A DNA stretch of 64,000 nt from Asterias rubens (Eukaryota), in the NCBI RefSeq assembly GCF_902459465.1, contig NC_047074.1:3906001-3970000 (forward strand), in the 5' to 3' direction. The translations under genes and the position numbers were made by a program. Under the pieces are notes generated by a model. It was not told where the DNA came from and ran no database searches. It saw nothing but the letters and a program-made list of their open reading frames with translations. Below, one piece after another: positions 14,689 to 57,858 of the stretch. How positions within the stretch are numbered: the first letter of the stretch is position 1; every line of letters begins with the position of its first letter.

Positions 14689-17600
14689 ATGAACCGCAAG
14701 GCCTTGGTCGGTGGTCTGGTGGTCCTCGTCGTCGTAGCGTTCTTGGCTATTTTCCTGCCCGTGTATCTCACGCAAGGCAATGACGCGGTCACACCACCGC
14801 CAGAGAACCTAACGCCCGACCAGCAGTTCTACCAAGATGTTAAAGACGAAGAAAGGTATAGTCTTCATAACATCTGAACAAAAAAATGGTCGGAATTTAC
14901 CCGTGTGCCATTTCCAATGGGGTCTGACCCATTTCTAGGTCAAGTTAACAACTAATTTGTCAACAAAAAGAATGTTGACCCATTATTTTCTGAGTCATTT
15001 TGACACCGATTCCTAGTCACGACACCGGAGTTGGCCATGACTCGCGGGACACAGGTTTTGTTGAATTACCCTTTAGTTTTTAGAGACGTGGTGTGCGATC
15101 TCAATAGAGATTTATATTAACTTTTGTTTAAGAATTAAACTTAGGAGAGAGAGTTTAGCTGTTATTTGAGATATTGGTTTGCCCGGTCAATTTGGTAAAA
15201 TGTTGAAAAGGTCTATGATGGTGAGAATGTGCATGTCTCAAAGTTAAATTTAATGAATTTGAACTGAAGAGGCAAAATCGTTTAGTGCATGAAAGTGAAA
15301 TAGGCTGAAGGAACCCTATAATAAAAACAAATTGCGTACTCTGTAGATTTGACTGCTACCCTGATCTTGACGTCACGCCGAGCAAGAATCTCTGTGAGGA
15401 GCGAGGCTGCTTCTGGAAACCAGCAACTCTAGCCAAGGCTCCTGAGTGTTTCTACCCATTGACCTATGGTTATCAGATGACACGGCTACCAGTGAATACT
15501 GACCTGGGTTGGGAGGCATACCTGAGCAGGTTAGATGGTGTGCCGAGCCGATATGGTAATGACGTCATGAATCTAAAAGTAGAGGTGGAGTTTCAGACGG
15601 ATTCTCGACTTCATTTCAAGGTAATTTTCCCGAAATGGACAACTTTGCTTAACCAGACTTGATTTTATTAATACTTCGATTAGATGAACCGTAGACTTTT
15701 GACTGCTAATTGGCAGCTGACTTACCAGGTAAACTTCCATTGTTTGCGTACCACCAAGTGTTCTCTTAAGTCCCCAATTGCCATCTCTCAAGACTCAACA
15801 CACTAAAAGTGACCCATATTTCGGTCAGGGTTTTAGCCAGAATTTGGTAAAAGGGTGTCCAAATTTGCCTGAAGTTTAAGAACTGCGTGTCCAAATTGTT
15901 CACTTACAAAACATGTTATAGAAACTGGACACTATTGGTAATTGCCAAAAGACCAGTCTTCTCACTTGGTGTATCTCAACATATGCATAAAATAAGAAAC
16001 CTGTGAAATTTGAGCTCAATTTGTCGTCGAAGTTGCGAGATAACAATGAAAGAAAAAAACACACTGGTCACACGAAGTTTTGTGCTTTCATCAGATGCTT
16101 GATTTTGAGACCTCAAATTCTAATTCTGAGGTATCGAAAACAAATTTGTGGAAAATTACTTCTTTCTCTAAAACTACATTACTTTTTATATTATCAACCT
16201 CTCCCCATCACTCGCTACCAAGTAAGGTTTTATGCGAATAACTATTTTGAGTAATTACCAATAGTGTTAATACTGCCTTTAATGTAAATAACATTAAAAA
16301 AAACAGGGTGACCAAATTTATAAAATTTTAAAAAGACACCAAAACAAGATACCCCTTATGGTTAGCACTAAATGATTTTTGGGCCCCAGGGGTCTGGGCA
16401 GTGGCACGGAAACTGGTAGAAATGTTGGATCCGGCGTCAGTTTCACAGATTCTGGGTCTTTGGACCAATAAATTACGACCAATTTAGAGTGCACTTCTTG
16501 AAGTCAGGGGGTACATGATTTTTGCTACCAAACAGTTTGAAAGTTAGTTGGCTAGGTATAGACGATGTGACCCATGTTTACATTCAAACCGCCCTCTGTT
16601 GACAAAGCACTGTATACGTCATGTTTCGCCGGGCAAAAAGACGCGTAGTCATGGTAAGATTGCAAACACTTTCTAGCTGGCTGCCAAAAACAGAAAGGTT
16701 TTGCCCAGCGGTGTGCGCGCGAATCATGTTATGGTTTTCGAGTGACGTCAGAGGTCACATCGTCTATATAGCGAGAATTGAGGAGTTATTTCTGAAATAA
16801 AAAGAAACTACGGTTTGAGCAGCATTTTTATGTGATGTTTCCTTTTTCCGTTTAAACAGATAACGGATGCCGATTCACCTCGGTTTGAAGTTCCTCTTGT
16901 GATTGACAAGCCCAACAAACAGCCGTCGGATCCTATGTATGAAGTCAGTTACAAAAGCAACCCGTTCAGTATCCAAGTCAGACGGAAAAGCACGGGTGTT
17001 CTTATGTAAGGCTATTTAGTTTTCTTCTCCCCCTAACAACCAATGTACATTTCATGACCCTCAGAAAAGTGAACTTTATCATTGTACTAGCCAAGACCCC
17101 AATGAGGAGAAGAAAATGAAGGTTTGAAAATCAGTTTCCGTCAGATGTGGGAGGAAAACCCCAGAGAATTGTTCCAGGGAAAACCCACGCAGTCAGGTAA
17201 AACCCAATACACATAGTGCCCCGGCTGGATTTGAACCGTGGTCCCAGAGGTGGAAGAAGAGGTAAAATACCAAATATGCCGCTATACGGTTGCCCGGATT
17301 GTATACTCCCCATTGGCCCGATGACCATGGTTTTAATGTTAAGACTTTAATTTAAACTGCGCCTTATAAGAACTAGTTATTATTCATTGGACACAGATTT
17401 GATTCTTCTGTTGGTGGGCTCACCTATGAGGATCAGTTTCTTCAACTGTCCACCAAACTACCTTCCAAGTACGTGTATGGCTTCGGGGAGCACAATCACC
17501 AGAGATTCCTGCACGATGTGGACTACAAGACATGGACCATGTTTTCAAGGGACGTTGCACCTGTGGTGAGTTACTGCATAACCTTGTCTACTGCCACCTA

Positions 17601-56500: not shown

Positions 56501-57858
56501 TACATGATCTGTTTTTAAAGTTTTTTTTTCTCTTTAATTTCAGACACATATGAGCGAAATATTGACATATACATGGAGTTCTTCGCAGATCTTGTAAGTA
56601 ACTTTGCTAAGCAAAATTTAGCAGGATACAGCAACAATTGGTACACAATTTGATATTTCCACTGCTAACCTTCTGATAAGTACATGTACGACTGTTTTGT
56701 GCTGAGATACTTTTTGTGCTTAAACAGGTCTATCAAATTGGACCCTTGTCAGCTGACAGGCAGTTTTGTAAGTCATGGATACAGGATCAGGACATTTTCA
56801 GCTTTCTGACTAAGTTGATAGAAAACAAAGCTACTGATATGTAGGCTACATGTAAATCTCTAAGCCACATTCATAATGAATGCAAATATTGGCTCCTCAC
56901 TCTTCTTTATTATAGCTTCGGCCGATGCAGTGTATTAGGCCTATACTGCAAACTGGGGTGTTAAAATTGACATTTGTCACATATAGATACCAACAAAGAA
57001 AATCACATTTAACAATATAATGATTTTTGGGGTTGAACAAAGAATTGACTATTTTTTTGACTACTGAATATTTTTTTTGACTACTGAATATTTTACAACA
57101 CAGTTAAAATACACTTAGTTTTGCCATCACAATTACATTGGTGTTGTTTTAACACTAATTATAATATAATTTTGATTCTCTCTAGGGTATCTATGTAACA
57201 ACACCCACTGTGTAAATTTTAACACCCCAGTTTTTGCAGCCTTGAATACTATCAGCCACCCTGCTGTTTTTATCATACAAAAAATCCAGCATGATTATAT
57301 TATGGTTGTCTTTTTCTTCCTTTTTTTCAGCTAAAATTGGAGATGCTGTCACAGCGAATCGGTTTAATGGAGTACAATGACAAGATTATTCTGCCCAGGA
57401 TTCAGAAGGTCACATTTGTCGGTCTACAGAAGAACCCTGGTAACCAGCTATATGTGGACAACGTGCAGCTCGGCACTGAATTCTTTGATTATGATGTCAC
57501 AAATCGGGTAAGTTTTCATTTTTTTTTTTTTTTAATTGTGTATGCAAGTCGCCAGACACACAAGGCCTGAAGGCCACTTCAAGGTGTGGGCTACAATTAT
57601 TTTTTTTGCCATCTACTCCTAGGGCTGAACTTGAGTGTTGCAGTTGGGATGGGAGATTTTTTTTTCACAGAGCTCGGGAAGGCACTGAGTTGTACAGTGC
57701 TAACACACATCCGTGTATATGGGTAAAACCAAAATTGATATTTAGCTGCTAACAGTTTTGTGGGTTTTTTTAATTTGATGTTACAGGTATTGGAAATCCG
57801 TGGAATTGACATGGACATCACATCAGACCATCGGATAGATCTGCAGGCACCAAACTAG
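35516..57858 (+). CDS. Membrane-anchored GH31-family paralog lacking both catalytic Asp residues (probable pseudoenzyme), 23 exons, 952 aa
   Basis: Exons 35516-35812, 36846-36986, 37853-38052, 38803-38980, 39535-39634, 39948-40060, 40500-40625, 41053-41178, 42099-42218, 43194-43307, 44977-45064, 45889-46006, 47164-47300, 47891-47925, 48546-48668, 51469-51617, 52095-52182 (GC donor), 52632-52700, 54123-54265, 54805-54899, 56544-56593, 57331-57507, 57787-57858 (2859 nt, no internal stop). Fold motifs are kept ([68 protein letters not shown]), but WIDMNEP reads IMTENEP and HWLGDN reads HFLGRN. Confidence 0.93.
35534..35602 (+). other. Signal-anchor / type II transmembrane helix of GH31 gene 2
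   Basis: MALKGP followed by [24 protein letters not shown] cleavable signal peptide cannot be excluded by eye. Confidence 0.65.
35917..36113. mobile_element. Family-A MITE, half copy
   Basis: TTAA|aggcagtgtacactattgg... breaks off at the internal palindrome gagacctcaagtttagaacttgaggtc. Confidence 0.8.
41274..41541. mobile_element. Symmetric foldback derivative of family A (the same end twice)
   Basis: Both ~125-bp arms carry the ttactcaaaataatt...gagtaatggggag...gagaaacggctccctctgaagt end in inverted orientation; TTAA on both flanks. Confidence 0.88.
41659..42036. mobile_element. Family-A MITE
   Basis: TTAA|aggcagtggacactattgacaatt...caagtaccaatagtgtccaatgta. Confidence 0.88.
42905..43125 (+). 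mobile_element. tRNA-headed interspersed repeat (SINE-like family J)
   Basis: Head CTCGG-TAGTCTAGTTGGTAAAAC-...-GTGGGTTCGAATCCCAC-CCGAG with A and B boxes, body gaaagtactgagtatacagtgctaacacacatcggtgta. Other copies at ~1215-1300, 12984-13115(-), 21950-22070, 29230-29480, 32000-32165(-) and 57655-57745. Confidence 0.78.
43403..43942. mobile_element. Family-A MITE with family-E element (43777-43933) nested in its terminal repeat
   Basis: TTAA|agacagtggacactattgg...ggtgtcCTG[E]CAGtgtcttt. Confidence 0.88.
44977..45064 (+). CDS. GH31 gene 2 exon 11: nucleophile position is Thr (ACC 44977-44979), next residue Glu
   Basis: Exon 10 ends ...PFDGIIM|gtgagt and exon 11 starts ttatag|TENEPANF. The intron position and phase are the same as in gene 1. 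Confidence 0.9.
46201..46570. mobile_element. TTAA MITE with ~90-bp imperfect TIRs (family C), nested in an older TIR element (~46028-46652)
   Basis: agggtctggttactttt...cacagatttacattaaacttac mirrored by gtaagtttaatgtaaatcgatggac...aaaaagtacccaaatcct|TTAA. The outer TIR is gcgagcaaaaacgtgaacgtga / tcacgttcacgtatttgctcgc. Confidence 0.8.
47164..47300 (+). CDS. GH31 gene 2 exon 13: acid/base position is Arg (AGG 47258-47260)
   Basis: Translates ...[23 protein letters not shown]. The exon is 137 nt, the same length as the gene 1 equivalent. Confidence 0.92.
49676..50130. repeat. Three degenerate tandem units of ~180-190 bp in gene 2 intron 15
   Basis: Recurring cacacaatcca..gatcttctttcttc.cccagtggg and ttctgacaacagtca.caaaaagagctcagttctga blocks. 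Confidence 0.75.
50971..51333. mobile_element. Family-A MITE
   Basis: aggcagtggacactattggtaatc...aattaccaatagtgtccagtgtct|TTAA. Confidence 0.88.
53415..53570. mobile_element. CATAGACCTTTTCGCAAATAC-TIR MITE
   Basis: ~21-bp TIR; near-identical inverted copy at 31014-31170. Confidence 0.85.
53716..54056. mobile_element. Family-A MITE, right end degenerate
   Basis: TTAA|agacactggacactattggtaattgtcaaagacc... Confidence 0.82.
55082..55545. other. Assembly gap (464 N) inside gene 2 intron 20
   Basis: Run of N. The flanking exons 54805-54899 and 56544-56593 join in frame (L-N-T-Y), so no exon is required inside the gap. Confidence 0.98.
55546..56400. repeat. Compound (GTT)n/(GCT)n minisatellite, 134-149 bp units
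   Basis: The anchor ggggatga(t/c)tat recurs at 55562, 55698, 55841, 55975, 56115 and 56264. Confidence 0.95.
56945..57240. mobile_element. MITE with actgcaaa(aa)ctggggtgttaaaatt TIRs
   Basis: actgcaaactggggtgttaaaattgaca...tgtaaattttaacaccccagtttttgcag. Confidence 0.7.

Follow-up and report, generated by a model that had tools for sequence, protein, structure and literature searches.

A probable GH31 pseudo-glycosidase beside an ancient active-type paralog in the sea star Asterias rubens

Two GH31 genes in tandem

A 64,000-nt window of the Asterias rubens genome (RefSeq assembly GCF_902459465.1, contig NC_047074.1, forward-strand positions 3,906,001 to 3,970,000; all positions below are counted from the first nucleotide of this window) was analyzed for two glycoside hydrolase family 31 (GH31) genes, here called gene 1 and gene 2. 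A first-pass annotation of the bare sequence had described them as complete same-strand paralogs about 3 kb apart, each with its own ATG, N-terminal hydrophobic anchor, trefoil and 23 exons. This description is borne out by the gene models, Kyte-Doolittle hydropathy and Pfam: the stop codon of gene 1 (32521) and the ATG of gene 2 (35516), both on the plus strand, are separated by 2,994 nt. Gene 1 is predicted to encode a functional type II membrane-anchored alpha-glucosidase of the SI/MGAM/acid alpha-glucosidase kind, and gene 2 a paralog that is, judging from its residues, catalytically dead. The coordinates of both genes and of other features are listed in Table 1.

Gene models were built by a homolog-guided junction search restricted to GT/GC-AG introns that keep the frame open, and the solution aligning best to the guide was retained. 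Guide homologs came from a search of cluster representatives: a 59-aa exon of gene 2, queried against 1.84 billion of them, returned usable reference homologs, including the dead Lytechinus ortholog (P0010), and no entry identical to the exon was found among them. A homolog search with residues 1-935 of the Patiria protein P0004 was dominated by two-module vertebrate proteins and yielded nothing new for gene 1. The gene 1 model has GT-AG introns throughout and its stop codon at 32519-32521. Its protein is colinear and gapless with A. amurensis RefSeq protein P0269 (97.5% identity) and is 74% identical to module 1 of P0004. The gene 2 model has its stop codon at 57856-57858 and no internal stops. 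Its protein aligns colinearly and without gaps to A. amurensis RefSeq protein P0167 (98.7% identity), with no residue missing over its whole length, and matches residues 814-1763 of the A. rubens RefSeq model P0268 without mismatch, save for a 2-aa difference at one splice acceptor.

The gene 1 and gene 2 proteins share 37% identity. Each has one hydrophobic stretch at approximately residues 5-27 (Kyte-Doolittle mean over 19 residues of 3.1 for gene 1 and 2.6 for gene 2), each gene gives a Pfam Trefoil match, and exon translations of both match PF01055, the GH31 TIM-barrel. Their full-length A. amurensis orthologs, P0167 and P0269, carry PF00088, PF13802, PF01055 and PF21365. Sequence matches in the PDB to MGAM, SI and GAA have E-values of 0 to 1e-153, and both genes belong to GH31 by fold and sequence. 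The shared intron phases noted in the first pass hold for introns 2-22, which occupy homologous positions with identical phases in the two genes, but not for intron 1, which lies 5' of the trefoil in gene 1 and 3' of it in gene 2.

Table 1. Features in the A. rubens window (positions counted from the first nucleotide of the window)
Feature	Position	Strand	Basis or remark
Upstream LIM-domain (PINCH-like) gene, 3' part	1..8924	+	LIM-like Cys/His open reading frame pieces; LIM gene directly 5' of the gene 1 ortholog in A. amurensis and Patiria
Gene 1 coding sequence, active-type GH31 alpha-glucosidase (predicted)	14689..32521	+	23 exons, 921 aa; junction search and translation
Gene 1 exons 1-12	14689-14855, 15347-15620, 16860-17005, 17397-17565, 18190-18289, 19591-19703, 20876-21001, 21232-21369, 22419-22520, 22926-23045, 24213-24297, 25104-25242	+	
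Gene 1 exons 13-23	25825-25961, 26302-26336, 27156-27272, 27700-27848, 28221-28302, 29135-29197, 29607-29737, 30539-30627, 30894-30955, 31761-31916, 32456-32521	+	
Gene 1 nucleophile motif, interrupted by intron 10	DALWI 23031-23045 + DMNEPSNF 24213-24236	+	Motif comparison
Gene 1 acid/base motif GHWLGDN	25904-25924	+	Motif comparison
Gene 1 3' untranslated region, to the limit of the RNA contig	32522..32695	+	AATAAA at 32535 (polyadenylation hexamer scan)
Highly repeated interspersed element, intergenic	33540..34340	.	RNA contig word depth 10^5 to 10^6, many partial matches, loose ends
Gene 2 5' untranslated region, minimum extent	35308..35515	+	RNA contig start 208 nt 5' of the ATG
Gene 2 coding sequence, GH31 paralog predicted to be catalytically dead	35516..57858	+	23 exons, 952 aa; junction search and translation
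Gene 2 exons 1-12	35516-35812, 36846-36986, 37853-38052, 38803-38980, 39535-39634, 39948-40060, 40500-40625, 41053-41178, 42099-42218, 43194-43307, 44977-45064, 45889-46006	+	
Gene 2 exons 13-23	47164-47300, 47891-47925, 48546-48668, 51469-51617, 52095-52182 (GC donor), 52632-52700, 54123-54265, 54805-54899, 56544-56593, 57331-57507, 57787-57858	+	
Gene 2 degenerate nucleophile motif, interrupted by intron 10	FDGIIM 43290-43307 + TENEPANF 44977-45000	+	Asp -> Thr506
Gene 2 degenerate acid/base motif GHFLGRN	47243-47263	+	Asp -> Arg606
Gene 2 intron 20	54900..56543	+	Holds assembly gap 55082-55545 and (TGTTGC/TGC)n microsatellite 55576-56387

Transcription was assessed with RNA contigs from runs of a close relative of A. 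rubens, placed on 31740-37739. A 2,544-nt contig (run X1, record 1) covers gene 1 exons 22-23 and ends at 32695, 174 nt past the stop codon. A 3,657-nt contig (run X1, record 6) starts at 35308, continues unbroken through the 5' untranslated region and exon 1 of gene 2, and is spliced to exon 2. No contig bridging the two genes was found among the contigs listed. Gene 2 is transcribed from its own start and spliced. In run X1 the contig depths are 62.6 for gene 1 and 66.9 for gene 2, and both genes have high depth in X1 and low depth in runs X9 and X10; the similar depth in X1 is a coarse co-occurrence and the sole positive hint of co-expression. In addition, a piece 100% identical to gene 2 exon 1 is present in a marine metatranscriptome, the whole coding sequence of the Holothuria ortholog lies in an intron-free 3,391-nt Logan contig (SRR29838370, run type unchecked), and the brittle-star ortholog is covered at full length by Logan contigs of 2,962 nt and 3,289 nt.

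The first pass had treated the two modules as separate genes, in agreement with the separate RNA contigs and with the A. amurensis RefSeq annotation, which lists the orthologs of gene 1 and gene 2 as two genes. The A. rubens RefSeq protein XP_033637849.1 (P0268, 1,763 aa) instead joins residues 130-918 of gene 1 to all of gene 2, with no mismatches, from a donor at 32509, 9 nt short of the stop codon of gene 1, to an acceptor (35468) within the 5' untranslated region of gene 2. The RNA contig of gene 2 reads straight through 35468, and the joined model lacks the anchor and trefoil of gene 1 and places the anchor of gene 2 in mid-chain. Two other fused models occur among the relatives: Patiria P0004 unites two active genes, and Antedon P0007 an active gene with a half-dead one. 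In each of the three, a separate Met, hydrophobic anchor and trefoil can be found for the second unit, whether in the genome or within the model. These fused models are probably annotation artefacts and give no 'Rosetta stone' evidence for an interaction.

Several further observations concern the gene 2 model and the surrounding DNA. Exon 5 can start at either of two acceptors 6 nt apart (39535/39541); the first is used in our model and in A. amurensis RefSeq, the second in A. rubens RefSeq (2 aa shorter), and the choice may reflect alternative splicing. The donor of intron 17 (52182-52632) is GC (GAG/GCAAGT), where the homologous gene 1 intron has GT. The window, with about 38% G+C, contains a single run of Ns, the assembly gap in intron 20. 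It hides no exon, since the flanking exons 20 and 21 join in frame (phase 1) and their peptide is continuous with the Lytechinus ortholog. The microsatellite directly 3' of the gap, about 800 nt long, probably caused it, and the poly-Q, poly-T and poly-N open frames on its minus strand are not genes. Copies related to the intergenic repeat occur at 35740-36140 and in introns of both genes (e.g., 18880-19220, 22080-22400, 41270-42000 and 53700-54040); it looks like an abundant transcribed element resembling a short interspersed nuclear element (SINE) or a miniature inverted-repeat transposable element (MITE). Finally, a tandem array of a 149-nt unit (63260-63999, about five copies, 83% matches) runs past the end of the window.

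Catalytic residues, constraint and age of the gene 2 clade

Active GH31 enzymes, whose catalytic residues are summarized in PMC8063059, carry a nucleophile Asp in the WIDMNE motif of beta-4 and an acid/base Asp in the HWLGDN motif of beta-6. Gene 1 has both (WIDMNEP, 23040-24233) and retains the GDIDYM and RNHN motifs; its nucleophile Asp is invariant in 36 of the 37 active homologs compared, the remaining row being an alignment gap in the motif. Gene 2 has neither, with Thr506 in IIMTENEP and Arg606 in GHFLGRN, and GDIDYM and RNHN have become SGMDYQ and RIFR. The first-pass contrast between a gene with every catalytic motif and one with none is therefore right for gene 1 and for both catalytic Asp residues of gene 2, but slightly too sweeping for the rest, as PPYWALG, YGHHP, NEP and GADICG persist in gene 2, as does the Arg of xRSTF. 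Without the nucleophile, the acid/base Asp and most glucose-binding residues, the gene 2 protein is predicted to be incapable of the canonical retaining mechanism.

The same positions were compared between the 37 active homologs, drawn from echinoderms, hemichordates, chordates, lophotrochozoans and arthropods, and seven members of the echinoderm clade to which gene 2 belongs (hereafter the dead clade). Among 120 columns that are near-invariant in the active homologs, 72 are kept in all seven dead-clade proteins and 23 are altered in at least five of them. The altered columns lie inside or beside the catalytic motifs and include, judging from the alignment to MGAM and the N-terminal MGAM active site, glucose-binding residues at the catalytic (-1) and neighboring (+1) subsites. 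The nucleophile position is Thr in 7/7 proteins, and the acid/base position is Arg, Lys or Asn. Trp747 is replaced by Phe and Asn651 by Lys or Arg in all seven, and the His of RNHN by Tyr in six; the residue following the Thr varies (Glu, Tyr, Met or Asp). Because the replacements themselves are fixed across classes, the pocket of gene 2 looks remodelled and newly constrained rather than eroded.

Constraint on the whole protein was judged from congeneric comparisons; synonymous sites between sea-star orders are expected to be saturated. The A. rubens and A. amurensis proteins differ at 12 of 952 positions for gene 2 and at 23 of 921 for gene 1. Exons 1-2 of gene 2 show 11 synonymous and three conservative non-synonymous differences from a congener's transcript. 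Identity between Asterias and Patiria is nearly the same for the two genes (75%, gene 2; 74%, gene 1), and the 23-exon open reading frame of the dead gene is intact in species from all four eleutherozoan classes. Gene 2 is thus under purifying selection no weaker than that acting on gene 1. Homology to active enzymes, loss of catalytic residues, constraint and expression, the combination that marks a pseudoenzyme, are all found in gene 2.

Searches with the Lytechinus protein and a clade profile recovered one dead-clade ortholog each in A. rubens, A. amurensis, Acanthaster planci, Patiria miniata, Amphiura filiformis, Diadema setosum, Lytechinus pictus and Holothuria leucospilota, and the profile search found no members outside the echinoderms. 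Identity to gene 2 falls from 77% in Acanthaster and 75% in Patiria to 50% in the brittle star Amphiura, 45% in the urchins Diadema and Lytechinus and 42% in the sea cucumber Holothuria. In a maximum-likelihood tree, the dead clade is monophyletic (Shimodaira-Hasegawa-like approximate likelihood ratio test, SH-aLRT, 99) and its branching follows the echinoderm class tree. Its sister, with support of 100, is gene b of the crinoid Antedon mediterranea. This gene keeps the nucleophile Asp and RNHN and lacks the acid/base Asp (His), Asp371, Trp484 and others, and looks like an intermediate, half-degenerate state. Gene 1 groups with the two Patiria copies P0004a and P0004b (support 100) inside an active-gene clade that holds all sampled echinoderm classes and some molluscs.

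The first pass had called the two proteins highly diverged, and the tree supports a very old divergence, each gene having its own orthologs in several echinoderm classes. The gene 1/gene 2 duplication dates back at least to crown echinoderms and may be still older. Grouping the echinoderm gene 1 clade with the dead clade, which would imply a duplication in the echinoderm stem, is disfavoured (approximately unbiased test, AU, p = 0.011), but the test was post hoc and involves long branches. The dead clade predates the split of the living echinoderm classes, its catalytic residues having been lost before they diverged. According to established phylogeny, these classes separated roughly half a billion years ago.

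The two clades also differ in their membrane-proximal parts. In the gene 1 clade, a four-Cys trefoil stands behind a variable stalk (in gene 1, exons 1-2, 14689-15620). In the dead clade, including the crinoid gene, the anchor is followed directly by a conserved P-(Y/F)-(S/A)-N-W-x-F juxtamembrane motif and a complete six-Cys trefoil (in gene 2, exon 1, 35516-35812; C43, C57, C69, C74, C75 and C90), of which Cys43 and Cys75 are specific to the dead clade. These features fit a membrane-proximal role.

Genomic linkage of the two genes

The order of a LIM-domain gene, gene 1 and gene 2 seen in the window recurs in A. amurensis. In the crinoid Antedon, an active gene (gene a) is followed in the same order and on the same strand by gene b, whose own Met, anchor and trefoil exon lie 600 nt after the last exon of gene a; no LIM gene is found upstream. 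Downstream of the Antedon pair, and on its strand, comes a sugar-transporter gene (MFS, Sugar_tr; L008 37803-41525).

Other echinoderms depart from this arrangement. On Patiria scaffold JADOBP010000008.1, the LIM gene and two active gene 1 co-orthologs lie on the plus strand at 3.78-3.84 Mb, and the dead ortholog lies 575 kb away on the minus strand at 3.19-3.22 Mb. One inversion with a breakpoint in the old gene 1-gene 2 spacer would produce this order. The tandem duplication of gene 1 in Patiria postdates the split from Asterias according to the tree. In Lytechinus, a fucosyltransferase gene lies upstream of the dead gene, and 4.2 Mb separate the latter from the closest member of the gene 1 clade found, which is on the opposite strand. 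In Acanthaster, as in Patiria, the dead gene is preceded by an SH3-domain gene and a gene lacking any Pfam domain. The 10 kb upstream of the dead gene contain no called gene in Diadema, Amphiura or Holothuria, and in these three species and Acanthaster no GH31 gene was found less than 10 kb from it.

A different neighbor is more regular. The dead gene is followed, after 3-9 kb and on the same strand, by a collagen/TNF-domain gene in Acanthaster (L004 22424-29466), Diadema (L009 47038-48313) and Amphiura (L010 41639-48316). This linkage, seen in three echinoderm classes, is more consistent than that of gene 1 and gene 2. Neither the collagen/TNF-domain gene nor the upstream neighbors of Acanthaster were found in the flanks of our window, which covers only 6 kb downstream of gene 2.

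Taken together, Asterias and Antedon are the only lineages in which the pairing of gene 1 and gene 2 was seen, and in Patiria and Lytechinus it is broken. Because the adjacency recurs in a crinoid, the tight tandem order may be ancestral; it is clearly dispensable. Conservation of a PINCH-GH31-GH31 order across relatives had been proposed as a check on a partnership between the two proteins. That order is kept in A. amurensis and broken in Patiria and Lytechinus, and the step from linkage to partnership is not supported, because the linkage is lost in close relatives.

Function of gene 2 and comparison with known systems

Several explanations of gene 2 compete. Were it a decaying, functionless duplicate, a unitary pseudogene in the making, the loss of all its catalytic residues would be expected. 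This is nonetheless extremely improbable in view of a 23-exon frame intact across four eleutherozoan classes, a 98.7% identity between Asterias species that leaves fewer changes than in gene 1, substitutions that are mostly synonymous, spliced full-length transcripts in Asterias, and intron-free full-length contigs for the sea-cucumber and brittle-star orthologs. An enzyme with a non-canonical mechanism or substrate, using Thr506, Glu507 (in sea stars) or the conserved basic residue 667, would agree with replaced pocket positions that are constrained across classes and not decayed. Yet the residue after the Thr is not conserved (Glu, Tyr, Met or Asp), Arg, Lys or Asn stands at the acid/base position, and we know of no GH31 member that acts without both catalytic Asp residues, so that we give this idea little credence. 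Still less is to be said for the reading of XP_033637849.1, that gene 1 and gene 2 form one gene for a two-module SI-like protein. The model does cover gene 1 residues 130-918 and all of gene 2 without a mismatch, but the RNA contigs end at 32695 and start at 35308, the gene 2 contig crosses the supposed acceptor, A. amurensis has two annotated genes, and similar artefacts appear in the fused Patiria and Antedon models. An SI/MGAM-type protein carries two GH31 modules on one chain behind a single N-terminal anchor; gene 1 has a stop at 32521, and gene 2 has its own ATG, anchor and trefoil. A mid-chain anchor, with the anchor and trefoil of gene 1 missing, is moreover topologically implausible for two lumenal modules. 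We consider this reading highly unlikely.

The proposal of the first pass, that gene 2 is a regulatory, trafficking or substrate-presenting partner forming a heterodimer with gene 1, the unfused equivalent of the SI/MGAM modules, deserves more weight than these and is still unlikely. Same-strand adjacency in both Asterias and Antedon, similar contig depths in one RNA library with both genes high in X1 and low in X9/X10, and the type II anchored ectodomains of both proteins are consistent with it. Dead paralogs that modulate an active glycosidase are also known, as with heparanase 2 and heparanase 1 (PMC12406646). Against it stand the loss of adjacency in Patiria, where 575 kb and a change of strand separate the genes, and in Lytechinus, where the distance is 4.2 Mb; the lack of any GH31 neighbor within 10 kb of the dead gene in four further species (Acanthaster, Diadema, Amphiura and Holothuria); and the tandem duplication of gene 1 without gene 2 in Patiria. 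Adjacency of paralogs in animals is the default result of tandem duplication and no evidence of interaction, and there is no true fusion of the two, as every fused database model has an internal Met and anchor. Unless an interaction is shown, the two-component idea for gene 1 and gene 2 remains an ordinary one.

We therefore regard it as probable that the locus holds a conserved pseudo-glycosidase beside an ancient active paralog and that gene 2 acts independently of gene 1. Under this reading, the two separate genes would descend from an ancient GH31 duplication. Gene 2 would represent A. rubens in a clade of GH31 pseudoenzymes that is echinoderm-wide, occurs in single copy and kept fold, anchor and trefoil. 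Its product would now be a glycoprotein that binds or scaffolds close to the membrane without hydrolytic activity, its pocket remodelled and newly constrained. The 3-kb adjacency in Asterias would be a tandem arrangement kept by chance, rearranged in other sea stars and urchins with neither gene lost. Some points weigh against an independent pseudo-glycosidase. The tree comes from a quick search with the dead clade on a long branch, and the loss of activity is predicted from the residues. A minor read-through transcript from gene 1 to gene 2 is possible, and the similar depth in one RNA library, together with adjacency kept in two distant lineages, is compatible with a functional link. The putative binding or scaffolding role is suggested by analogy. 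A bolder proposal is that gene 2 founds an undescribed echinoderm-wide family of SI/MGAM-type GH31 pseudo-glycosidases, whose remodelled but conserved pocket, six-Cys trefoil and juxtamembrane motif would serve a new non-hydrolytic membrane function. They might assist another membrane protein as its ancillary subunit or receptor, or modulate the neighboring active glucosidase. We put this forward tentatively, as a possibility that is more doubtful than not.

Since the dead clade is single-copy, expressed and constrained, its members are probably useful at the gut or another epithelial membrane, and the clade offers a natural experiment on the repurposing of an alpha-glucosidase pocket. It also bears on annotation. 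Pipelines name the dead proteins 'sucrase-isomaltase' or 'maltase-glucoamylase' and sometimes fuse them with a neighbor, so counts of echinoderm digestive enzymes may include a non-enzyme. In Holothuria leucospilota, for example, six MGA and three SUIS genes have been counted (PMC11470021); the dead ortholog of this species, P0161, is annotated as 'Maltase-glucoamylase, intestinal' and may be among those counted.

Among known systems, the closest in sequence are SI and MGAM. Among solved structures, MGAM at full length (9kz6) and the N-terminal modules of MGAM (2qly) and SI (3lpo) match best. Both echinoderm genes share with SI and MGAM the type II anchor, the trefoil (P-type) and the order of N-domain, barrel and C-domain, and gene 1 has all the catalytic motifs. 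They differ in being unfused single-module genes with their own anchors; moreover, both modules of SI and MGAM are active, whereas gene 2 lacks both Asp residues. Dead glycosidase paralogs are a familiar source of new functions, as chi-lectins, heparanase 2 and the heavy chains of transporters show. In function, gene 2 is most readily compared with rBAT (SLC3A1) and 4F2hc (SLC3A2), GH13-like 'fake alpha-glucosidase' heavy chains of heteromeric amino-acid transporters (PMC8537225). These are type II single-pass glycoproteins in which a bulky, inactive alpha-glucosidase-fold ectodomain serves as an ancillary subunit. Those proteins belong to GH13 and not GH31, and no SLC7-type partner is indicated for gene 2. 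An unpaired juxtamembrane Cys like that of rBAT/4F2hc was also considered for gene 2 and rejected: the extra C43 and C75 complete the six-Cys trefoil, and the Cys count of the ectodomain is even.

Within GH31, a dipteran NET37/MYORG-like clade 'without the catalytic residues' (PMC8063059) offers another parallel, as a paralog clade that lacks the catalytic Asp and persists across species. It belongs to a different subfamily and phylum, has no trefoil, and no tandem with an active paralog is described for it. Heparanase 2 is an inactive glycosidase paralog that affects heparanase 1 biology (PMC12406646), a relation of the sort proposed in the first pass for gene 2 and gene 1; it belongs to GH79, and the antagonism described there is experimental. 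In the literature searched, no report was found of a dead paralog in the SI/MGAM/GAA branch of GH31 or in echinoderms.

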